The notes: generated from the letters alone by a model not told the origin. Numbered from the stretch's first letter, positions 1,919 through 28,844 are shown. The stretch is 64,000 bases of DNA from Ophelia neglecta (GCA_965285935.1 OZ260662.1:87854001-87918000); one strand, 5' to 3'. Numbers and translations are program-made.

Positions 1919-3239
1919 CATGTTATATATAAACCATGACAAGCTTTTCCTAGAAAAACAAAGGTTTTAGAATATGAGGCACAATCCAAGATTTACCAAA
2001 TCCAAGTTTCCAGACTTCATTCATAAGGCCTGTACCATGACATGTTCCTTATTTGGCAACAGCAGCACCCAGCCGGTCAACATTGGGGAGATGTGGGCCC
2101 CACAAATGTGATCTCTAAAGTGTTGAACAGCAAACAGCGACATTGCCCATTAACAGAAATCCAAGGCGCAATACTACAGCAAATAGTATGGAATGGTTTG
2201 AATATAGCCTAGACAAACATTTGATATTCTTTGTTTCTAAAGACTAATAAAGAGTATCTTTTTAGAATATCTATTGGCATATTTCTAGCTAAAAAATCAC
2301 AAAAATAGTAGGACCGACCGCAATGAGCCTGTGTTTCAAGTTAGGGATGAAATAAAGAAAAAAAAATTAAGGGACAATGGGAACTTTAATGCTTTGGGCA
2401 TATGCTCCCACTGCTTTGATAGCAAGGCTGTAGGCCAAGGGATCAAGGCAGTTAGGGAGAGCTTATTACTCTTGCGGTATAGAAAATTCCCCTTAATGGC
2501 AGGTCCTATATTTGTTTAGTCTGTCATGATAGAATAAGCTACAAACTTGCATTGCTAAAGCCTGGCAAATTGGGAAGATTTGCTCAGTAGGAAAATGTAT
2601 TGGAGTATTATGGGTGATCATCCATATTGTACACCCACTGGAGATCCATGTTTGAGCTATAGATGCTAGGATGAGATGGTTTTGCTCCGGTGAGATGAGA
2701 AGAATGACACAGCTCATCGTCTAGTTTATGGATTTAAAGCTCTTTACCATTACAACATAAAAAGCCCATTTTTTGCTTTATGATAATGTTGAAAATAGGT
2801 GGGATTTAAAAGGTATATGCTTGAGGTCAATATTTTTACAAAGTACAGTCAACATGACATGTATTTGACAGATAAAGGCTTGACATGCTGAGTACTGGCA
2901 TAACCTGATAAGAGTATAACTACAATATACTGTATTACTATGGTGTAATTGATGTTTTAAAAAAATAACAATATGTATCACCAATGTCAGAAAAATAGAA
3001 AAAAGGTTGTTTGCTGTCACGGCTTGTCATATACTCTGTGTCAAAAGTCATATCTTTCACATTGTTTTAGAAAATCACAATGAAATATTTTTGTGTGCAA
3101 AAGTGTTATAAACACCTACGGCAAATACCAAACCCTTCAAATGAACCCTTTAACGGAAGATGAATAAAAAGGTTACTAGCGTTAGAAACAGTTAAGTGGG
3201 TGGTAGTGATTGCAGGTGTGACCTGGGCTACCTTATTGT
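1919..3239. repeat. Copy A of 1.32-kb direct duplication of non-coding host DNA (copy B 11628-12948)
   Basis: Constant 9709-bp offset at both ends. Three short ORFs have identical translations in both copies. No mismatch seen in spot comparisons. Confidence 0.95.
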
Positions 3240-4317
3240 TGTAACCTTGGGTAATTTTTCCCTCTACATTTTGTTAAGAGATAGGTAGGAATCAAGGTAA
3301 GTTGTTTTGTTGTTCAGTGATCGTTGTTTATTGTTTCAAGTTACACGCATATGCTTGGGACCCTTATATCTTTTGAACACCTGTGAACCAAACAAAATTA
3401 TATCTTTTACACACTAACACACTATTTATACACAAATATACACATCATTAATATCGTTTAAACATCATTCCATATTCATTCAATCACTTCTATTCACATC
3501 CTTTTAAACATCACTTCATATTCATTTAAACACTATTTCATATCCATTTAAACACTATTTTTCCAGAACACGCATTATCAATGAAACCTCAATTATATCA
3601 TACCCTGAATTGGGGTGTCCGAATGAGAGATGAGAGGCTCTGGGGAGGGCGTCTATTTCAGATCTATAAGTAACACAAACTGACTGGTTTAGATACAGCC
3701 AATATAAAATGCACTACAGTATCGGTCCTTATATAGGCCAACACATACGAAGTCAATGCCTTAAGTCATGTAGTACAGGGTCACATGCCTACACAATATA
3801 CAGTGTGGCAGTTATAGGTTTCTGTCAATACATGTGACAAAGGCCTAGACTAAATGTCAAGAGATATGTGCCAAGTACCAGCAAAATACTCTCTTCTCAA
3901 GAATACAGGTTATTTTATATACCCAACACACTATTAAAGACACAGTACAGTGTTTAAATAGACTTTCAATGTACTAAAAGTATAGATTTGGTATGACAAA
4001 CCTCAATTAGAATTTCCTATTAACAATTTCACATCCTTCCCTGTCAGAATCTTGAGAGCCTCTGATTTAAAACAGTTACACTTCCCACAAGGCAGCACAA
4101 AACCATTTAAGGGATCACATACCATTGGTCAGATCCAATATACAACACAGGTCAAGGTGACACTTTACATAAGGTAATACCACTTGTGCATAACTAATTA
4201 GCTGACACCACAGCTACATAATCATGATAATACTATACATACAGTTCATACACACACACACACTACTAGGTATACGGAAGTAGTAATCCAAATGGCTTAA
4301 GATCCCATCTGGTTACA
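3240..4317 (-). repeat. 3' LTR of the Gypsy element (1078 bp)
   Basis: 7-bp terminal inverted repeats TGTAACC/GGTTACA. Immediately preceded on the minus strand by a purine tract. Homologous (inverted) to 10152-11203. Confidence 0.92.
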
Positions 4318-4785: not shown

Positions 4786-7700
4786 CTAGACCCACTCAAT
4801 CAGAACTCGAGCCTTCTTTGGATTCTCAGGAAATATCATATCTTTGATGAAATTTCTCATGCCTGTAATATATGTTCCATCACGGAGTTTCAAAGGTGGT
4901 TGTCTATTGCGGGTAGGGCGAGACCTTCCATCGCCATCCCGGGCCTTGACTACGGATGGTATACTGGCTTCATTCACTGGTTGATCTCCTTTCTCATCTG
5001 GGTCTGCTGTACCATTGTGTACTGCAGCTATTACCAATTTTTCTTTTGGTGTGCCCTGGTCTTCATCTGTACTTCTTTCAACAGTATCGTCTTCTTCCTG
5101 TTCGCCCTGTTTAGTTCTCATAACTGGGATATTTTCGACAACTGCCTTTCTGATAATGCTGGAACCTTCATTGGATGTGTCTTCTGCATTTTCTTGTATG
5201 ACCTGACTATCTATTCTGACTGGCTCTTGAGTATTCTGTACGTCCTCAGACCTTTCTATGGTAAAAAACTGAAAGTCTTCTTCAGAATCGTCATCTGTGA
5301 TTTCCTCTTGGTCTTCCCTATGAACATTAATTTCAACCAATGGCTCTGGTTCTGCAGGTTCTGTAGTCCGCTCCGAGACTTCGTCCACATTTTTGATTCC
5401 AACGGGCAATGGTTCTATTGGTAGCAAGTGATTCCTGTGTAGAGTTCTGACTGGCTCTTCCTCATCTGTTTCTTTCCTGACCTTGAATACTGGGATATCT
5501 GTGTTGGGCTGGTCCACTACCACATAAACATCCTCTTCCCATCTGTCATCCAGCTTGTGTTTTCCCGAAAATGCTAATTTCTTAACCAGTACTCGGTCAT
5601 CTTTTTCCAAGACAGCTCCTCGTATTCGCAGGTCGTATGCACTCTTTTGTTTTTCTCTTGATTTCTCTGCTGCTGCACTGGCGGCCTGATATGACTTCCT
5701 TAAATGGTGTTTCAGGGTCTCAACGTATTCACAGTATGAAGGGGTTTTTGGCTCATCTATACCAATGAGAAGGTCTATGGGCAACTTTGGGTTTCGACCA
5801 AACATCAAGAAGTGAGGTGAGTATCCAGTACTTTCATGTCTGGTACAGTTGTAAGCATGAGCCATCAGGTCGATGTAGGTCTTCCAATCAGCTTTCTCGT
5901 CTGCTTCTAGAGTGCCCAGCATGTTCAGCAAAGTCCTGTTCATACGTTCCGTCATACCATTGCCGCTTGGGTGATAGATGGAAGTCCTGGATTTGGCTAT
6001 ATTTGTGAGTTTGCACAACTCTGCAATCAATGCGCTCTCAAAATTAGTACCCTGGTCACTGTGTATCCTTTGGGGTAGGCCAAAGTATACAATAAACTTG
6101 TGAAGAAGTGCTTCAGCTGTTGTTTTTGCAGTCTGGTTTTTCGTTGGCACCGCTACGGCATATCTCGTAAAGTGGTCTGTTATCACCAATATACTATTGT
6201 GCCCTCCCTTTGAAGTTTCAAGTGATAGGAAATCCATTGACACGAGCTCCAATGGTTGAGAGGTCTTGATACTCACTAGTGGAGCACGTTGAGTAGTTGG
6301 CGACTTTCTTCTTAGGCATCGATCACACTTTGTAACCCAATCAGTCACATTCTTTGATAGATATGTCCAATAGTATCTCTCTTGGACAAGCTGTAGTGTG
6401 CGTTCAGATCCTGGGTGTCCAATATCATTGTGTAGTGCCTGCAAAATTGTGTTCTTAAGTGATTCTGGTATCACTATCTGAAATCGTTCTTCATCTTGTA
6501 TCTTTGTTCTTCTACACAACACTCCTCTTTTCATCACCAGTCTTCCACGTTGTCGCCATAAGGGACGCATGGCTTCATTACAAGGTAATCTCTTGTTGCT
6601 ACTCTGTGACATGTATTTGATCATGTCATTCAAGATAGGGTCAGCACGTTGCTTTAGTCGAATATTACGGGTAGAGGTGGCATCATCGATTGTTGGGTTT
6701 TCCGCCTCGAACAGTTGTTCGCAAACATTTGCAGACATGCATAAGCTGTTTATGAAAGATGGGGATATCTGACTTCTGTAGCAAACTGATTTGACAGATT
6801 CACCGTCAATCTGTTTTACTTCTGTCGTCTCTTGGTTGTCTGTGTTGTGAGGTAGCCTTGACAGTACATCAGCATCAATATTTTTCTTCCCTGGTCTGTA
6901 TCTAATGCTGAAGCTGTAGGTGGCAAGGGCTGCGGACCATCTGTGACCAGTCGCATCTAATTTGGCAGATGTTAGAATGTACGTCAATGGATTGTTGTCA
7001 GTCACTACAACAAATTCTGGTGCTCCATAAAGGTAGTCATGAAATTTTTCTGTCACTGCCCATTTCAGAGCAAGAAATTCCAATTTGTGGGCGGGGTAAT
7101 TCTTTTCAGACTTCGTCAACCCACGGCTGGCATACGCTATAACACGTTCTTTTCCATCATGGTTTTGGTACAAGATAGCTCCGAGGCCACTGACGCTCGC
7201 ATCTGTATGTAGGATGAATTGTTTGTCGAAGTCGGCATATGCCAGGATAGGTGGGGATGTCAGTTCATTCTTCAGTTTATCAAAAGCTGTTTGCTCTGTT
7301 TGACCCCAACGCCATGGCTTCGGTTCTGACTTCGACATTTCTCCCTTCTTCTTCTTCTTCTTCTTCTTCTGCTTAGCTCCTATCAGGTCATGCAGTGGTT
7401 TGGCGATCTGAGCAAATCTTGGGCAGAAACGACGATAGTAGCTAGCGAATCCAATGAATTGCATCAGCTCAAGCTGGTTTACAGGCGTTTTCCAACTGGT
7501 TATCCGCTCAATTTTGTCAGGGTCGGTCTCTACTCCTTCAGATGACACAATGTGGCCAAGGAACCTGGTTTTCTTTTTAAGGAAATGACACTTGGATGGT
7601 GCTAACTTCAGGTTGCTCTTCTCTATTCTTTCAAAAACTTCTCCAAGGTTGGCCAGGTGTTCCTCAAATGTCTTTGAGAAAACAATGATGTCGTCAAGGT

Positions 7701-9210
7701 AAATGACGCAGATGCGATGGTTAAGATCACCGAGCATATTTTCCATCATGCGTTGGTATGTGGCTGGTGCATTTGACAATCCAAAGGGTAATCGATTCCA
7801 TTCGTAGAAACCAAGTGGTCCGGCAGTAAATGCGGTGTATTGCTTGTGTTCCTCTTTCACCTCTATTTGGTGGTATCCACTTTTCATGTCTAAAACAGAG
7901 AAAAACTGTGCACCGTTTAAACAATCAAGTATGTCTTCTAACCTGGGCATTGCGTAGGCGTCTGGTACTGTCTGGAGGTTGAGCTTCCGGTAGTCAATAC
8001 ATAAACGAAGGGTTCCATTTTTGCGGCGAGCTATTACAATATTGGAAGACCATGGGCTCTTTGAGTGGCGAATCAGTCCGGCTCCCAACAGATCAGTCAG
8101 ATGTTCCTTCAGTTCTGTGTAGAGGTTAGGTGGTATCCTACCATAATGACTCTTGATGGGTTGGCTATTTATTAAATTTATCTCGTGTTCAACAGTCGGG
8201 TGTTGTCCAACATCTTTCGGATCTTTTGAAAAGATATGTGACCAAATCTTCAGAAATTCCCTCAACTCTTGAAATTGGTTCTCGGTTCCTGCAGAATCTT
8301 CATCACCATGGTCCAGATTTAAGTCTTCGGGTAAGTCGGTAGGTCGATCAATCTTTTCCTCCTGTGGTAATTCAACTGGTGACTCTATGGATACTGGCTG
8401 GAGTTCTCCTATGACAGCCCGGGGTGGGATGACTAAGGTTCTACTTGCGTGATTAGCAATAGTGACAGAAAACTGGCCACGCATATCACTCTGATAGTCA
8501 ATCACTATAGGCATGATTTCTGAAGTGTCTGGTAATGTAGATTTCTTCGTAGGCAACAGTAAAGCGGCACAATTCGGGTGTGGCAAAGCATGGGATAAAA
8601 ATCCTTTCAGGGTAATGGTCCGATTGGGTTGGATAGTCACATTGCCATGTTCTGCGCTCTTAATTATACCCAAACTATCAACATGCTGGAGGCTTCTCTT
8701 TTGGACTGACATGCAACGCATCGCCAAATACCAAGGGGTGGATAACGGGGCTGTTTGTAGGTATCTGGTGCCATACTGTTGTTCGGTTTGTTCCTTAACG
8801 TTTTTCAAGATGTTGGTTCCTAAGTTGATTGGCACACTTTTGCTAAAAGGGGTGTCTCGAGTGACCAAGAAAAGTGCTGGCATTCCCTCTGGTAGCGTAA
8901 GTTTGGGTACCTGTAGATACGCCTCAACAAACCCAAGGTACTCCAAAAGCTGTCCACTTGCGGTCTCGATTTCCAAAAGTTTATCCAATGGCTGGCAAGT
9001 TAGTCCACGAGGTTCGAAATGTTTCCGATAAAATGCTTCATTGACTGTTGAGATTCCAGATCCGGTATCTAGAAGTGTCTGGCTATCTACTGTGGTGTCG
9101 TCAAAAACAAATGTTATGGGTGTCACATTTGTTTCACCGACTAGCTGAGGAGCTGATTGTACTGGGCCTACTGGTGCGCTCCGGTATAAGTAGGTCCTTT
9201 CCGGTTTAAA
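4786..9210 (-). CDS. pol: Gypsy Pol polyprotein (aspartic protease, RT, RNase H, DDE integrase), probably expressed by -1 frameshift from gag
   Basis: 1446-aa ORF, open upstream to the slippery site. LLDTGS protease; LRLCIDYRKLN, LDMKSGYHQI, LPFGL and YLDD in RT; TDAS/ELLA-like/TDNNPL RNase H; HHCC zinc finger, SMDF, HSDQG and ERMNRTL in integrase. Confidence 0.97.
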   Translation of the reverse strand, partial: FKPERTYLYRSAPVGPVQSAPQLVGETNVTPITFVFDDTTVDSQTLLDTGSGISTVNEAFYRKHFEPRGLTCQPLDKLLEIETASGQLLEYLGFVEAYLQVPKLTLPEGMPALFLVTRDTPFSKSVPINLGTNILKNVKEQTEQQYGTRYLQTAPLSTPWYLAMRCMSVQKRSLQHVDSLGIIKSAEHGNVTIQPNRTITLKGFLSHALPHPNCAALLLPTKKSTLPDTSEIMPIVIDYQSDMRGQFSVTIANHASRTLVIPPRAVIGELQPVSIESPVELPQEEKIDRPTDLPEDLNLDHGDEDSAGTENQFQELREFLKIWSHIFSKDPKDVGQHPTVEHEINLINSQPIKSHYGRIPPNLYTELKEHLTDLLGAGLIRHSKSPWSSNIVIARRKNGTLRLCIDYRKLNLQTVPDAYAMPRLEDILDCLNGAQFFSVLDMKSGYHQIEVKEEHKQYTAFTAGPLGFYEWNRLPFGLSNAPATYQRMMENMLGDLNHRICVIYLDDIIVFSKTFEEHLANLGEVFERIEKSNLKLAPSKCHFLKKKTRFLGHIVSSEGVETDPDKIERITSWKTPVNQLELMQFIGFASYYRRFCPRFAQIAKPLHDLIGAKQKKKKKKKKGEMSKSEPKPWRWGQTEQTAFDKLKNELTSPPILAYADFDKQFILHTDASVSGLGAILYQNHDGKERVIAYASRGLTKSEKNYPAHKLEFLALKWAVTEKFHDYLYGAPEFVVVTDNNPLTYILTSAKLDATGHRWSAALATYSFSIRYRPGKKNIDADVLSRLPHNTDNQETTEVKQIDGESVKSVCYRSQISPSFINSLCMSANVCEQLFEAENPTIDDATSTRNIRLKQRADPILNDMIKYMSQSSNKRLPCNEAMRPLWRQRGRLVMKRGVLCRRTKIQDEERFQIVIPESLKNTILQALHNDIGHPGSERTLQLVQERYYWTYLSKNVTDWVTKCDRCLRRKSPTTQRAPLVSIKTSQPLELVSMDFLSLETSKGGHNSILVITDHFTRYAVAVPTKNQTAKTTAEALLHKFIVYFGLPQRIHSDQGTNFESALIAELCKLTNIAKSRTSIYHPSGNGMTERMNRTLLNMLGTLEADEKADWKTYIDLMAHAYNCTRHESTGYSPHFLMFGRNPKLPIDLLIGIDEPKTPSYCEYVETLKHHLRKSYQAASAAAEKSREKQKSAYDLRIRGAVLEKDDRVLVKKLAFSGKHKLDDRWEEDVYVVVDQPNTDIPVFKVRKETDEEEPVRTLHRNHLLPIEPLPVGIKNVDEVSERTTEPAEPEPLVEINVHREDQEEITDDDSEEDFQFFTIERSEDVQNTQEPVRIDSQVIQENAEDTSNEGSSIIRKAVVENIPVMRTKQGEQEEDDTVERSTDEDQGTPKEKLVIAAVHNGTADPDEKGDQPVNEASIPSVVKARDGDGRSRPTRNRQPPLKLRDGTYITGMRNFIKDMIFPENPKKARVLIEWV
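9149..9210 (-). promoter_or_regulatory. -1 programmed ribosomal frameshift signal (U UUA AAC plus putative pseudoknot)
   Basis: Heptamer at 9210-9204 is in phase with gag (CAT TTA AAC). pol lies in the -1 frame and is closed by TGA two codons upstream. Stems CCUACU/AGUAGG and GGAGC/GCUCC follow. Confidence 0.85.
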
Positions 9211-10148
9211 TGATCAACTATTACTCGGCAGCCTCGTTGTATGTGTCCATACTGACCGCATCGCCAACATCGGAGTGGTTCCCGGTCTGTCATCACTGGT
9301 CTCTGGCCTCTGCCTGCGCTCTGATTTGTCATTTGTGCAGTAGCATTCGAGTTTATACCAACTCTTGGCTGGCCCCTGCGACTCTGATCATTATCTGTTA
9401 CTGGCGTGTATGGATATGCTTCTGGATTCAATGGGATGTGGGCCTGCTCTGCCTGTCCGGACTTCTTCAGTTGAGTCACCTGCTGTTGTAGGTTTGCCAC
9501 CTGGTGCTTAAGTGCATCTATTTCTGAGCTTGATTGTGGTGTGGGATCCGCTATTATCTGTACCCTATTCGTAGTTTTCACCGTCTGCAATTCAGCTTCA
9601 ATTTGACGTAAGTGAATTCTTAAATGGTCGAAATCCTTTATGGTGTCAAATTTGTGGCGAGACCTCTCCTTGAGATTGTTTCTCAATCCGTACCAAAACT
9701 TGGTCCTCAGCATTTCACTAGTGGCTGTAGCATCTACGTGTCCTATCTTTTGGGCTTGTACCAAAATATCTTCCAATCGACAACCCCATCTAACTACCGT
9801 CTCTCCGTCCAGTTGCTTGGCATTATAGAAGTCTGCCAGTATCTCCTCTGTTGGCTGTACACTGCCGTAAAGTTGTTCTAGCTTTATCAGAAGGTCATCT
9901 AAACTAGCTGTCTCTCCAAGTCGCATAGCTACTCTACTTGCTCCTCCTCTAAGTGACTTGCGAACATGTTGTAGTAAAACTCTAGGGTCCATGGTGTGGC
10001 TATCTACCAGACAATTAACCTCGTAACGCCAAAGGTCATAGTCGGTATCCTTGTTCGGGTCTCCTGAAAATGGTGCTATTTTTGGTGGCAACGGTCTCAT
10101 TACATCACTGTTTTGGAATGATCTACCAGGGCCGGTCAAGGGTGTCGA
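9168..10148 (-). CDS. gag: Gypsy Gag (PNMA-like capsid plus zinc knuckle), N-terminally truncated
   Basis: FSGD..YDLWRYEV..SLRG.A capsid motifs and CWRCGQYGHIQRGC knuckle. The frame runs into a TAG at the junction with the inverted LTR (10149-10151). Confidence 0.9.
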   Translation of the reverse strand, partial: STPLTGPGRSFQNSDVMRPLPPKIAPFSGDPNKDTDYDLWRYEVNCLVDSHTMDPRVLLQHVRKSLRGGASRVAMRLGETASLDDLLIKLEQLYGSVQPTEEILADFYNAKQLDGETVVRWGCRLEDILVQAQKIGHVDATATSEMLRTKFWYGLRNNLKERSRHKFDTIKDFDHLRIHLRQIEAELQTVKTTNRVQIIADPTPQSSSEIDALKHQVANLQQQVTQLKKSGQAEQAHIPLNPEAYPYTPVTDNDQSRRGQPRVGINSNATAQMTNQSAGRGQRPVMTDREPLRCWRCGQYGHIQRGCRVIVDHLNRKGPTYTGAHQ

Positions 10149-10151
10149 CTA

Positions 10152-11203
10152 GTATGTATAGTATTATCATGATTATGTAGCTGTGGTGTCAGCTAATTAG
10201 TTATGCACAAGTGGTATTACCTTATGTAAAGTGTCACCTTGACCTGTGTTGTATATTGGATCTGACCAATGGTATGTGATCCCTTAAATGGTTTTTGTGC
10301 TGCCTTGTGGGAAGTTTAACTGTTTTAAATCAGAGGCTCTCAAGATTCTGACAGGGAAGGATGTGAAATTGTTAATAGGAAATTCTAATTGGGGTTTGTC
10401 ATACCAAATCTATACTTTTAGTACATTGAAAGTCTATTTAAACACTGTACTGTGTCTTTAATAGTGTGTTGGGTATATAAAATAACCTGTATTCTTGAGA
10501 AGAGAGTATTTTGCTGGTACTTGGCACATATCTCTTGACATTTAGTCTAGGCCTTTGTCACATGTATTGACAGAAACCTATAACTGCCACACTGTATATT
10601 GTGTAGGCATGTGACCCTGTACTACATGACTTAAGGCATTGACTTCGTATGTGTTGGCCTATATAAGGACCGATACTGTAGTGCATTTTATATTGGCTGT
10701 ATCTAAACCAGTCAGTTTGTGTTACTTATAGATCTGAAATAGACGCCCTCCCCAGAGCCTCTCATCTCTCATTCGGACACCCCAATTCAGGGTATGATAT
10801 AATTGAGGTTTCATTGATAATGCGTGTTCTGGAAAAATAGTGTTTAAATGGATATGAAATAGTGTTCAAATGAATATGAATAGTAGTGTTTAAATGAATG
10901 TTAATAGTAGTGTTTAAATGAATATGAAGTGATGTTTAAAAGGATGTGAATAGAAGTGATTGAATGAATATGGAATGATGTTTAAACGATATTAATGATG
11001 TGTATATTTGTGTATAAATAGTGTGTTAGTGTGTAAAAGATATAATTTTGTTTGGTTCACAGGTGTTCAAAAGATATAAGGGTCCCAAACATATGTGTGT
11101 AGCTTGAAACAATAAACAACGATCACTGAACAACAAAACAACTTACCTTGATTCCTACCTACCAATTAACAAAATGTAGAGGGAAAAATTACCCAAGGTT
11201 ACA
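10152..11203 (+). repeat. Inverted, 5'-truncated copy of the Gypsy LTR
   Basis: Reverse complement of 3240-4242. Lacks the first 75 bp of the LTR, carries ~49 extra bp in an internal repeat and several substitutions, ends GGTTACA. Confidence 0.93.
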
Positions 11204-11205
11204 AT

Positions 11206-11629
11206 TGTAACAACCGGTGGTCTCAGCGGGGTTTGAACTCACTACCCTTGGGTTTCCAGCCAACCACTCTACCAAGTTTGCCAAAGGAGTAACCCCTCTA
11301 GCCAAGCTAGTAGGAGTGTTGTGATCATGCACCAGTGGCCATGACCTGCTCATACATCTCTGTTACATTCTCCCCCCTACTGAGAACCACGTCCCCGTGG
11401 TGGTATGGCCACAGGACGGCTGTTGGGTTCGAGACTCTCGGTGAGACAGTCCCCTACTAGGCTCCATTGTAACAACCGGTGGTCTCAGCGGGGTTTGAAC
11501 TCACTACCCTTGGGTTTCCAGCCAACCACTCTACCAAGTTTGCCAAAGGGGTAACCCCTCTAGCCAAGCTAGTAGGAGTGTTGTGATCATGCACCAGTGG
11601 CCATGACCTGCTCATACATCTCTGTTACA
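11206..11629 (-). mobile_element. TRIM (non-autonomous mini LTR retrotransposon) with tRNA-like LTRs, Helenus-like
   Basis: Two 162-bp LTRs (11206-11367, 11468-11629; one mismatch seen) with TGTAAC...GTTACA ends. 100-bp interior with PBS TGGAGCCTAGTAGGGGA and PPT AGTAGGGGGGAGAA. A-box TGGCAAACTTGG and B-box GAGTTCAAACC in each LTR. Confidence 0.9.
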
Positions 11630-12948
11630 TGTTATATATAAACCATGACAAGCTTTTCCTAGAAAAACAAAGGTTTTAGAATATGAGGCACAATCCAAGA
11701 TTTACCAAATCCAAGTTTCCAGACTTCATTCATAAGGCCTGTACCATGACATGTTCCTTATTTGGCAACAGCAGCACCCAGCCGGTCAACATTGGGGAGA
11801 TGTGGGCCCCACAAATGTGATCTCTAAAGTGTTGAACAGCAAACAGCGACATTGCCCATTAACAGAAATCCAAGGCGCAATACTACAGCAAATAGTATGG
11901 AATGGTTTGAATATAGCCTAGACAAACATTTGATATTCTTTGTTTCTAAAGACTAATAAAGAGTATCTTTTTAGAATATCTATTGGCATATTTCTAGCTA
12001 AAAAATCACAAAAATAGTAGGACCGACCGCAATGAGCCTGTGTTTCAAGTTAGGGATGAAATAAAGAAAAAAAAATTAAGGGACAATGGGAACTTTAATG
12101 CTTTGGGCATATGCTCCCACTGCTTTGATAGCAAGGCTGTAGGCCAAGGGATCAAGGCAGTTAGGGAGAGCTTATTACTCTTGCGGTATAGAAAATTCCC
12201 CTTAATGGCAGGTCCTATATTTGTTTAGTCTGTCATGATAGAATAAGCTACAAACTTGCATTGCTAAAGCCTGGCAAATTGGGAAGATTTGCTCAGTAGG
12301 AAAATGTATTGGAGTATTATGGGTGATCATCCATATTGTACACCCACTGGAGATCCATGTTTGAGCTATAGATGCTAGGATGAGATGGTTTTGCTCCGGT
12401 GAGATGAGAAGAATGACACAGCTCATCGTCTAGTTTATGGATTTAAAGCTCTTTACCATTACAACATAAAAAGCCCATTTTTTGCTTTATGATAATGTTG
12501 AAAATAGGTGGGATTTAAAAGGTATATGCTTGAGGTCAATATTTTTACAAAGTACAGTCAACATGACATGTATTTGACAGATAAAGGCTTGACATGCTGA
12601 GTACTGGCATAACCTGATAAGAGTATAACTACAATATACTGTATTACTATGGTGTAATTGATGTTTTAAAAAAATAACAATATGTATCACCAATGTCAGA
12701 AAAATAGAAAAAAGGTTGTTTGCTGTCACGGCTTGTCATATACTCTGTGTCAAAAGTCATATCTTTCACATTGTTTTAGAAAATCACAATGAAATATTTT
12801 TGTGTGCAAAAGTGTTATAAACACCTACGGCAAATACCAAACCCTTCAAATGAACCCTTTAACGGAAGATGAATAAAAAGGTTACTAGCGTTAGAAACAG
12901 TTAAGTGGGTGGTAGTGATTGCAGGTGTGACCTGGGCTACCTTATTGT
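11628..12948. repeat. Copy B of the 1.32-kb duplication; continues into the apparent empty insertion site
   Basis: Matches 1919-3239. After ccttattgt it continues attcaacg rather than into the LTR. Confidence 0.95.
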
Positions 12949-26764: not shown

Positions 26765-28844
26765 ATCTCCATGCTTAATGTAGATTTTAAGATAGCATCC
26801 AAAGCCATAGCCGAAAGAATAAAATCCAAACTTCCCAAACTCATCCACAACAATCAAGTTGGCTACGTTAAGGACAGGCATATCTCAAGCAATATAAGGT
26901 CAATATCAGACATATTATTCTATACAAAAGCAGTGAATATTCCAGGGATTTTACTCAGTATCGATTTTGAAAAGGCTTTCGACTCGGTGGATTGGTTGTT
27001 TTTGAGGGCAACATTGGAAAAATATAATTTCGGCAAGTCACTTATAGGGTGGGTTGATCTGTTCTATACAGATGCTATGAGCTGTGTCATCAATAACGGG
27101 CACATGTCGAGCTATTTTTCTTTGGGTAGAGGGGTGAGACTTATCGCCCTACCTGTTTGTGCTGGTAGCAGAAATCCTTGCCTGTAGCATCAGACAAAAT
27201 CCAAGAATTGTGGGTATAGAAGTGGGGGGCTCTGAAGTAAAGTTACTGCAGTACGCTGACGACACAAATGGTATGGTGCGAGATGTTCAATCAGCGAGGT
27301 ATTTTTTAGATACGGTGGAGGAGTTTGGTCAACACTCGGGTCTCAGATTAAATCGGGACAAAACGGAGGCTATCTGGTTGGGGTCATCTAGAGGTAGCAA
27401 CGAGAAACCTCTCGGTATATATTGGCCAGTTAGACCGCTAAAAGTGCTGGGCATTTACTTTTCTTATAATGAAGAACAAAATAATGACTTGAATTATCAA
27501 AAGAAAATTGACAAATGTAAGAATATACTGAATGAGTGGAAAGGTAGAGGTTTGACCATGATAGGTCGAGTTATTGTATTGAGAGCTTTTATTGTATCGC
27601 AGTTTCTGTACACTACGCAAGCTCTGTACATGCCCGAGACGTATATACAGATGGTGCAAAACTTAATTTCTGACTTCATTTGGTTTGGTAAAAGGCCGAA
27701 ATTGAAAAAAGAGGTGCTAGTGAGAAAGAAGGAACATGGAGGGCTAAATGTTCCTTGCTTTAAAAGTATGGTTGAGTGTTCTTATATAAAGTGGCTCAAA
27801 AGAATGATTATGGAAGAACAAAGCACATGGAGATACTTTTTAGATTATTATATGAAATCGTGCAATGTCAATCTGTATGCTCTTTTATGCTCAAATTATG
27901 ATTGTAAAGACATTCTTTTAGAAGGAAAGGTGCCCAAATTTTACGTATGTATGTTAGCATGTTGGTTCAGATATGGGAACACAAATATTCCAAGGAAATT
28001 CTGTCTGTTTTACAATAGAAATATCCTGGTAGATGGCAAGATAATATTTTATAAACAATTCTATGATGTAGGAATCAGATATGTATGGGATGTGTGTAAT
28101 CAATATGGTGACATAATATCCTTTTGCGACCTGGTACAGAAATATGGCTTAGACAGTAAAAATTTGTTGCACTGGATGGGTATTGTAGATGCGGTTAGCA
28201 AATCTGACATTGTATATGAAGAAGCATTAAGCTACGAAACGGAGGATACCAAATTTTTGATTAACCAGGTTCCTTTAGAGTGTGTAACAACAAAAGAGAT
28301 ATATGCTGAAATATTTGATAGAAACGGTATAAACAAAGATTATGCGCCAAGAATTACAAAGTATGTGAAAGCCAAGGAAGGAGTTTGTTTATCGCAAGTC
28401 TTCAAACGAATATATACTGGACTTGCAGACACCAGACTAAGAGAGTTTCATGACATTTCAGTAAATAATTATTGGTTGTTCAAATGGGGTTTAAAGGAGC
28501 ATGATATGTGCACCTTCTGTAATGAGGAGGTTGAGGATCTACATCATATGTATTGGGAGTGTGTTGTTGTACAGGGTTTTTGGAAGGAATGTGAGAAACG
28601 AGTATTTAAAGAAAAGCTAAATGTAGAAGACATTTTCTTTGGAAGAGATGAGAGTTTGTTTTTTACTCTTTCTTGTTTAGCCAAGAAGTATCTGTATACC
28701 TGTAGACTAAAAGACGCCTTTCCTAATTTTGAGGCCTACAAAAGAGTAAGTATGCATCAAAGGGAAATAGAAGTGTTAATGTCAACAACTGAAAAGCAGA
28801 ATGCAGGGCATGTCAACAAATGGGCTGGATTCACAATAGCATGA
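26765..28844 (+). pseudogene. LINE ORF2 fragment (RT plus CCHC), frameshifted
   Basis: GVR[QGDP]LSPYLF has lost about 11 bp at 27140/27141, splitting the ORF into 26771-27187 and 27159-28844. Confidence 0.9.

Follow-up and report, generated by a model that had tools for sequence, protein, structure and literature searches.

A probable Helenus-type TRIM with a decayed tRNA-derived module in its LTRs in the genome of Ophelia neglecta

Positions 11206-11629 of the window, by which we mean the whole stretch of 64,000 nucleotides of Ophelia neglecta DNA that was analysed (GCA_965285935.1 OZ260662.1:87854001-87918000), hold a 424-bp element with tRNA-like terminal repeats, next to a Ty3/Gypsy retrotransposon. 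The locus raises the questions of what kind of element this is, whether the tRNA-like part of its LTRs might recruit Pol III and whether the neighbour might be the autonomous element that mobilises it. As argued below, it is probably a copy of a young, moderately repeated, non-coding Helenus-type TRIM ('TRIMp3'), whose putative life cycle would lead from Pol III transcription to insertion by a Gypsy integrase.

The element is bounded by a 165-nt direct repeat of 99% identity (11204-11368 and 11466-11630). Trimming of this repeat to TG...CA leaves two LTRs of 162 bp each, at 11206-11367 and 11468-11629, which differ at a single position and whose termini form the 7-bp inverted repeat TGTAACA/TGTTACA. 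The minus strand is the sense strand, because a pyrimidine run lies beside 11368 and the complement of TGG beside 11467. The interior (11368-11467) has 100 bp, taken up by a single A, an 18-nt PBS, two hairpins and a PPT, with no space for an ORF. The features, in sense order, are the following.

11206-11629, minus strand: the entire TRIM copy, 424 bp
11468-11629, minus strand: 5' LTR, 162 bp, TG...CA, one mismatch to the other LTR, with the same boundaries in 25 genomic copies
11548-11576, minus strand: upstream hairpin module of the 5' LTR (LTR 54-82, CCTACTAGC...GCTAGAGGGGTTACCCC), with its 3' LTR counterpart at 11286-11314
11477-11553, minus strand: tRNA-derived module of the 5' LTR (LTR 77-153), the copy that would serve as promoter
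11534-11545, minus strand: A-box-like motif TGGCAAACTTGG of the 5' LTR (LTR 85-96), from motif fit and conservation in copies
11492-11502, minus strand: B-box-like motif GAGTTCAAACC of the 5' LTR (LTR 128-138), from motif fit
11449-11466, minus strand: PBS TGGAGCCTAGTAGGGGAC, 18 nt, separated from the LTR by a single A and exactly complementary to the tRNA-Lys(UUU) 3' end plus CCA
11431-11453, minus strand: first interior hairpin, overlapping the end of the PBS, from the centroid structure of the RNA fold
11390-11418, minus strand: second interior hairpin, with a stem of ~10 bp, from the centroid structure of the RNA fold
11368-11381, minus strand: PPT AGTAGGGGGGAGAA, abutting the 3' LTR, read from the sequence
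11206-11367, minus strand: 3' LTR, with its tRNA-derived module at 11215-11291, A-box at 11272-11283 and B-box at 11230-11240

The original prediction, made from the sequence of the window, had described a 424-bp TRIM with an interior of PBS, hairpin and PPT. LTRs, PBS and PPT were all confirmed, and two hairpins were found. The motifs that it quoted are present on the minus strand as described, TGGCAAACTTGGTAGAG at LTR 85-101 (window 11283-11267) and GAGTTCAAACC at LTR 128-138 (11240-11230), and the GAGACCA said to end the module maps to LTR 144-150. With its short direct LTRs, its PBS and PPT and the TSD-flanked dispersed copies described next, the element is a TRIM.

Searching the 762-Mb O. 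neglecta assembly gave 319 first-look candidates, and the 40 that were scored are 85-100% identical to the element, many of them full-length. The prediction had made itself dependent on the existence of other copies with TSDs. Perfect 4-bp TSDs flank 15 of 25 distinct full-length copies, for a chance rate of 1/256 per copy, and the copies devoid of a perfect TSD are mostly members of tandem arrays or of head-to-head pairs. Tandem arrays had also been proposed as something to look for; one is present at C5:71.58 Mb, made up of five LTRs and the four interiors between them at a spacing of 262 bp, LTR-(interior-LTR)x4. In six of the 25 copies the two LTRs are identical, indicating recent activity of the family, and in several others they are one base apart. 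Exact genome matches number 138 for a 20-mer of the A-box and 52 for a 20-mer of the PBS, with none for the backwards controls, and this surplus of LTR over PBS motifs implies that solo LTRs exist.

Other loci carry parts of the element. At C2:20528146 (L067/L071), a TRIM interior of 97% identity is preceded by the last 5 nt of the LTR only, with 2 nt after it, and the sequence around it is unrelated and free of LTRs within 6 kb. In a diverged LTR-like sequence at C5:45025455 (L037:1420-1560), the hairpin block with CCTACTAGC is present and the A-box (TAGCTCACTTGG) is intact, but there is no B-box; the 15 nt before this sequence, GGTTTATATATAACA, are identical to those before the TRIM in the window.

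What, then, is the tRNA-like part of the LTRs? ARAGORN called no tRNA over the window, and Rfam returned no tRNA match in 851 bp at E values up to 10. A covariance-model search had been suggested as a check, and its outcome is mixed: on 103 bp around the module, tRNA is the best sense-strand match in Rfam (model positions 9-63), but at 11.6 bits and an E value of 5.8, which is below the Rfam tRNA gathering score of 29 and not significant alone. The remark that the acceptor stem no longer pairs was right, as the module has no such stem, its anticodon loop is of 8 nt, and its RNA does not fold into a cloverleaf, being less stable than its own shuffles (z = +1.76). From the ARAGORN, Rfam and folding results, we conclude that the LTR module is not a tRNA gene.

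The ancestry of the module is nevertheless traceable by alignment. Three genuine tRNAs were used. The tRNA-Phe of the same genome aligns colinearly with the module from D-loop to T-loop (z 4.4, a score reached by 2 of 1000 shuffles), and the alignments to tRNA-Lys and tRNA-Leu are not significant. A pattern search for canonical A-box regions further yielded a solitary unit (L038) at C12:56.70 Mb, with TAGCTCAGTTGG and GGTTCAAACC, that aligns with LTR 77-152 over 77 columns (z 21). The same unit scores 20.5 bits on the Rfam tRNA model and aligns with the tRNA-Phe(GAA) of the genome at z 9.9 and with its tRNA-Lys(UUU) at z 5.3. It is hardly credible that the module is a working tRNA gene, for which the box motifs speak and nothing more, or that its likeness to tRNA arose by chance. 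The Rfam E value and the non-significant tRNA-Lys and tRNA-Leu alignments are what a chance likeness could appeal to; it is excluded by the tRNA-Phe alignment, by the chain from the LTR through L038 to tRNA and by homology, judged by eye, to the better-preserved tRNA parts of Helenus elements. The missing acceptor stem, the absence of a cloverleaf and the enlarged anticodon loop speak against a working gene. These comparisons show the 3' half of each LTR to be, on grounds of homology, a decayed tRNA-derived module, and on the strength of the tRNA-Phe alignment and the L038 chain we retain the claim that the LTRs carry a tRNA-like module with A- and B-box-like motifs.

The solitary unit itself (L038:1496-1576, C12:56699642) is ~80 nt long, with canonical A and B boxes, ~80% identity to the LTR module and flanks found at no other genomic site. 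Either a remnant of whatever gave rise to the LTR module or a stray piece of an LTR is a candidate explanation for it. We also considered a SINE, which is ruled out by the uniqueness of the part downstream. In another copy of the TRIM (L024:1687-1957), ARAGORN run with introns reports, across both LTR modules, a 'tRNA-Arg(tcg)' whose intron would measure 173 nt. This call is a false positive of the kind that Helenus elements are known to cause, and it illustrates how such LTRs can mislead gene finders.

TRIMs with tRNA-derived sequence in their LTRs were described as Helenus, or 'TRIMp3', by Kojima in 2024, from fungi, one plant and six animal phyla (PMC10886601). The group that the prediction had named does exist, and the window LTR resembles several of its published LTRs by eye. 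By-eye comparison with the supplement of that work showed that the order of blocks in the window LTR matches Helenus-2_CVi, Helenus-1_CGi and Helenus-6_SaGl of oysters, Helenus-1_PiNo of a pen shell and Helenus-1_LiLo of a nemertean. The common blocks, also delimited by eye, are first a hairpin, TCCTACTAGC...GGCTAG.GGG, followed by a short GGGTTA.CCC palindrome and TTT; second a D-arm, TTGGTAGAGTG, generally (T/C)GGTAGAGTG; and third a T-loop, GTTCAAACCCC, generally GTTCAA(A/T)CCCC. As read by eye from the supplement text, the published LTRs of oysters, Pinna and Lineus too have the upstream hairpin block just 5' of their tRNA part. Counted by hand, the columns that match Helenus-2_CVi make up about four fifths of ~57 from the hairpin to the D-arm, and about three fifths from the anticodon to the end.

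The element is like Helenus in other respects as well. Its total of 424 bp, with LTRs of 162 bp and an interior of 100 bp, compares with a range of 311-1263 bp in PMC10886601, and the ends are of the TG...CA type, often TGTAAC...GTTACA in the group, with 4-bp TSDs. Further likenesses are a PBS that begins one to three bases past the LTR and is complementary to the 3' end of a tRNA, a G-rich PPT, the occurrence of tandem arrays and solo LTRs, and the order hairpin (CCTACTAGC/GCTAG.GGG), D-arm and T-loop within the LTR. It differs from its relatives in the first half of the A-box, TGGCAAAC instead of TAGCTC, in a B-box that reads AGTTC where PMC10886601 gives GGTTC, and in a tRNA part that reaches nearly to the end of the LTR, with 9 bp remaining. 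The primer also differs, as far as the published PBS figure goes: the bivalve families use tRNA-Lys (CTT where the type is named), His, Ile, Pro, Glu or Ser, whereas the PBS of the window TRIM matches tRNA-Lys(UUU). Words sampled from its PBS, A-box region and B-box are absent from the Helenus sequence supplement (PMC10886601), none of whose families has this PBS, and the described families therefore do not include this one. Its placement as a new family of the Helenus group appears right, given the LTR homology seen by eye, the 4-bp TSDs and the PBS matching a tRNA 3' end.

Comparison with other small elements helps to situate it. The plant Cassandra and the nemertean Ajax elements, with 5S rRNA-derived LTRs, are likewise non-coding and trans-dependent and have the Pol III promoter of a small-RNA gene in their LTRs, which is a prediction for the element studied here. 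They differ by a type 1 promoter (5S boxes A/IE/C) in place of a type 2 promoter (tRNA boxes A/B) and by 5-bp TSDs, and they have no sequence relation with it. SINEs derived from tRNAs (SINE2) resemble it by their tRNA head with A and B boxes, their short non-coding body and the loss of the tRNA fold; they are devoid of LTRs, PBS and PPT, end in a LINE-like tail or a simple repeat and depend on target-primed reverse transcription by LINEs. We ruled out that the window element is such a SINE in view of its LTRs, PBS, PPT and fixed 4-bp TSDs. Non-coding elements of the form LTR-PBS-PPT-LTR, mobilised in trans and prone to form tandem arrays, also include ordinary TRIMs ('TRIMp2') and LARDs, but the LTR of an ordinary TRIM contains no module derived from a small RNA.

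Whether the module could still recruit Pol III depends on its boxes. The critical positions of type 2 Pol III promoters are T8, G10, C11, A14, G18 and G19, and G53, T54, T55, C56, A58 and C61. All of them are retained in the LTR boxes, whose starts are 44 nt apart, a tRNA-like spacing. The A-box TGGCAAACTTGG fits TRGCNNA..GG with the G15 position as sole exception, and 4 of its 12 positions differ from the canonical TAGCTCAGTTGG. The B-box GAGTTCAAACC fits GGTTCRANNCC bar position 52, with A for G, and 5 of 56 copies have G there. Relative to Kojima's TRGCY...YGG and GGTTC, the LTR reads TGGCA...TGG and AGTTC, with one departure in each box, the Y in the case of the A-box.

Conservation of the boxes across copies had been anticipated, and it is observed: in an alignment of 56 LTRs no A-box position varies, and hardly any does in the core of the B-box, in line with the 138 exact 20-mer matches. 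Variation is lower in the boxes than elsewhere (0.83 versus 1.94 minor alleles per site in these 56 LTRs), but not significantly (Fisher p 0.20, window permutation 0.17), a result to be set against so young a family. No TATAA, AATAAA or ATTAAA is found in the element. There is no TTTT on the sense strand of 25 copies either, which is uninformative as 53% of shuffles also lack it.

The tRNA-like module could instead be a mere relic of a SINE or tRNA pseudogene in the ancestral LTR, with Pol II making the RNA from the initial ~75 bp of the LTR, or neighbouring genes supplying it by read-through, and with boxes that are irrelevant. We consider this possible, if on the unlikely side. It would account for box variation that is not significantly below that of the remaining LTR, for the drift of the A-box at one third of its positions from the form kept in the sister unit L038, and for the loss of all tRNA folding; moreover, the promoter function of Helenus has not been validated (Kojima 2024, PMC10886601). 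It would leave unexplained why the critical positions (whose choice is general knowledge) are all kept at tRNA spacing, in an element without a TATA box or polyadenylation signal, and why the D-arm and T-loop blocks are, by eye, parts held in common with Helenus LTRs of other phyla. The 5S analogue Cassandra does yield Pol III transcripts (PMC10886601). We infer, as the literature on Helenus does (PMC10886601), that Pol III may transcribe the TRIM.

In our preferred reading, that of a Helenus-type TRIM with a Pol III-driven life cycle, Pol III would be brought to the 5' LTR by its internal boxes, start near LTR position 75 and read through PBS, hairpins, PPT and 3' LTR, along a sense strand without T4 runs. 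Proteins of an autonomous Ty3/Gypsy element would then package the RNA, tRNA-Lys(UUU) would prime its reverse transcription, and the integrase of the autonomous Ty3/Gypsy would insert the cDNA and generate the 4-bp duplications.

The candidate primer is clearly assignable. The 18-nt PBS is the exact complement of the last 15 nt of tRNA-Lys(UUU) plus CCA. A pattern combining T-loop and PBS complement matched 47 sites in the genome, all at C8:12.58-12.73 Mb, and 0 with the backwards control. Five of these copies were examined and proved to be canonical genes for tRNA-Lys(UUU), interrupted at the customary position by an intron of ~20 nt; the D-arm of another C8 copy (L031) is damaged, and at least one of the Lys copies has a deleted D-loop. 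The C8 region (L031-L036) is a tandem array with a 1.93-kb unit in which intron-bearing tRNA-Lys(UUU) genes alternate with tRNA-Phe(GAA), the 47 Lys copies being in both orientations.

Reverse transcriptase copies 18 nt of the tRNA 3' end, stopping before position 58. At two chimeric loci, the TRIM part stops exactly after the 18-nt PBS. These loci (L066 at C1:7101590 and L068 at C12:76164785; also L069 and L070) are 88-92% alike between L066 and L068. There, immediately after the TRIM LTR and PBS, come in antisense the gag and the N-terminus of pol from another Gypsy family, with 28-52% amino acid identity to the window's proteins, and the end of the TRIM part is that expected of plus-strand strong-stop DNA. 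Self-priming by the tRNA-like 3' end of the LTR was rejected because, as read from the sequence, that end is not complementary to the PBS. The same holds for the tRNA-like end of Helenus LTRs (PMC10886601).

Which autonomous element would supply the proteins? The original prediction pointed to the adjoining element as the probable partner. On the minus strand, it encodes a PNMA-like Gag (9168-10139) and a Pol (4786-9126) with reverse transcriptase, RNase H and integrase in Ty3/Gypsy order. The genome holds about ten copies of this Gypsy with 98-99% identity, and this near-identity means that the family is young too. In other copies, the LTR is ~1.08-1.13 kb long, starts with TGTAACCAGATG, ends with AAGGTTACA and is followed by an A and the PBS TGGTGACCCCGACGTGATCG, and the interior measures ~7.4 kb. 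Tandem repeats of ~46 bp lie in the Gypsy LTR (window 10833-11015 and 3457-3556), and the two LTR pieces of the window differ chiefly in the copy number of these repeats, by ~50 bp. Elsewhere in the window (27159-28844), a 561-residue ORF corresponds to a partial reverse transcriptase with zf-RVT of a non-LTR retrotransposon, and an ORF of equal length is found in L070.

The Gypsy of the window follows intact copies colinearly from its 3' LTR (3240-4317) onwards but no further than position 10144. It lacks ~1.49 kb of the 5' interior, the PBS and the 5' LTR, and has in their place an inverted LTR piece (10148-11203) without the first ~77 nt of the LTR. At 11197-11212, the U5 end of this piece meets the U5 end of the TRIM tail-to-tail, ...GGTTACA-A|T-TGTAAC... 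(ACAA|TTGT, 11200-11207), and each of the two ends retains the single base that separates LTR and PBS in intact copies. The junction looks as if two linear cDNAs had been ligated at their unprocessed ends. On its outside, the composite has the U3 end of the TRIM (11629) and the U5 end of the Gypsy (3240), and it is bracketed by a 1319-bp host segment present at 1921-3239 and 11630-12948 in direct orientation, with 100% identity and no further copy in the genome. The possibility that this 1.3-kb repeat is the LTR of a larger element was ruled out, as its only two genome copies are both in the window.

The window copy of the TRIM is accordingly not a simple insertion but one end of a composite. 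A TSD had been presumed for it; its flanks are AACA and ATTG, with no duplication, because it lies at the end of the composite insertion. Judging from its ends and from the repeat around it, the composite looks as though cDNA ends had been ligated and then inserted, with duplication of a very long stretch of target. Post-insertion or local rearrangement, or misassembly, is a candidate alternative. In three public contig sets from one sample, none of them recorded as RNA, summed depth over the TRIM is very high and the contigs break at repeat borders. No junction between TRIM and host or between TRIM and Gypsy is bridged among the contigs listed, and they therefore neither confirm nor refute the composite assembly.

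Does the neighbouring Gypsy belong to the family that mobilises the TRIM? The features that recommend it are similar termini, since the six terminal bases of the LTRs are alike at both ends (TGTAAC...GTTACA) and are followed by a single A and by TGG; an alignment of PPT and LTR start over 41 columns, whose score 4 of 500 shuffles equal; the youth of the Gypsy family; and the structure of the composite, with a tail-to-tail U5 junction in which each end has one extra A and with outer ends, one from each element, as if both had been used in a single integration. TGTAAC...GTTACA ends, however, are common among published bivalve Helenus LTRs (PMC10886601). Animal Helenus families make 4-bp TSDs and have PBSs in common with Gypsy elements, and a shared PBS is the criterion by which partners are recognised (PMC10886601). 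The Gypsy PBS is complementary to a tRNA with the anticodon loop CTCCAGA, that is tRNA-Trp(CCA), with 50 genome matches, versus tRNA-Lys(UUU) for the TRIM, so that the neighbour, if judged by its PBS, is not the partner. In addition, the leaders have only GTTACAATGG in common, TRIM parts also occur joined to the gag-pol of another Gypsy family, and the window Gypsy copy is defective, being 5'-truncated and rearranged. We consequently regard the partnership as doubtful, keeping in its favour the similar LTR ends, the PPT and LTR start and the cDNA-end-like junction. Of the matches for tRNA-Trp(CCA), 44 of the 50 form a dense cluster of 3' halves at C2:38.11-38.18 Mb, whose 3' end corresponds to the primer of the Gypsy family.

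Genome pattern searches for an autonomous element with the PBS of the TRIM, which covered most cases, one of them narrowed by an extra anchor letter, found none, and returned only TRIM copies, chimeras and chance matches. The chimeric loci L066 and L068, in which the TRIM LTR and PBS precede a different interior of 2.4 kb, were considered as partners and rejected, since this interior is the antisense gag-pol of the other Gypsy family without long ORFs and no second LTR lies within 9 kb.

A bolder scenario brings these elements together. A TRIM cDNA and pieces of Gypsy cDNA would have been joined through their unprocessed U5 ends, and in one aberrant integration the intasome would have used the U3 end of the TRIM and the U5 end of the Gypsy, the two ends landing 1.3 kb apart. 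We find this scenario improbable. If it were true, the locus would be a fossil of a single integration, showing that a tRNA-Trp-primed Gypsy handles a tRNA-Lys-primed Helenus in trans despite the mismatch between their PBSs, that TRIM mobilisation does not need a shared PBS, and that the TRIM family is active at present from a Pol III promoter.

Returning to the reading that we favour, of a young Helenus-type TRIM, the element is an ordinary repeat beyond its primer and its value as a test case. As to the former, the family adds tRNA-Lys(UUU), a primer that does not appear to be given for the bivalve families in the PBS figure of PMC10886601. As to the latter, Helenus elements were named only in 2024 (PMC10886601), and that the tRNA-like part of their LTRs drives transcription is still undemonstrated by anyone. 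The O. neglecta family, which is young (several copies with identical LTRs), small (~50 interiors and ~140 LTRs) and endowed with a readily identified primer tRNA, offers a convenient case in which to test it.
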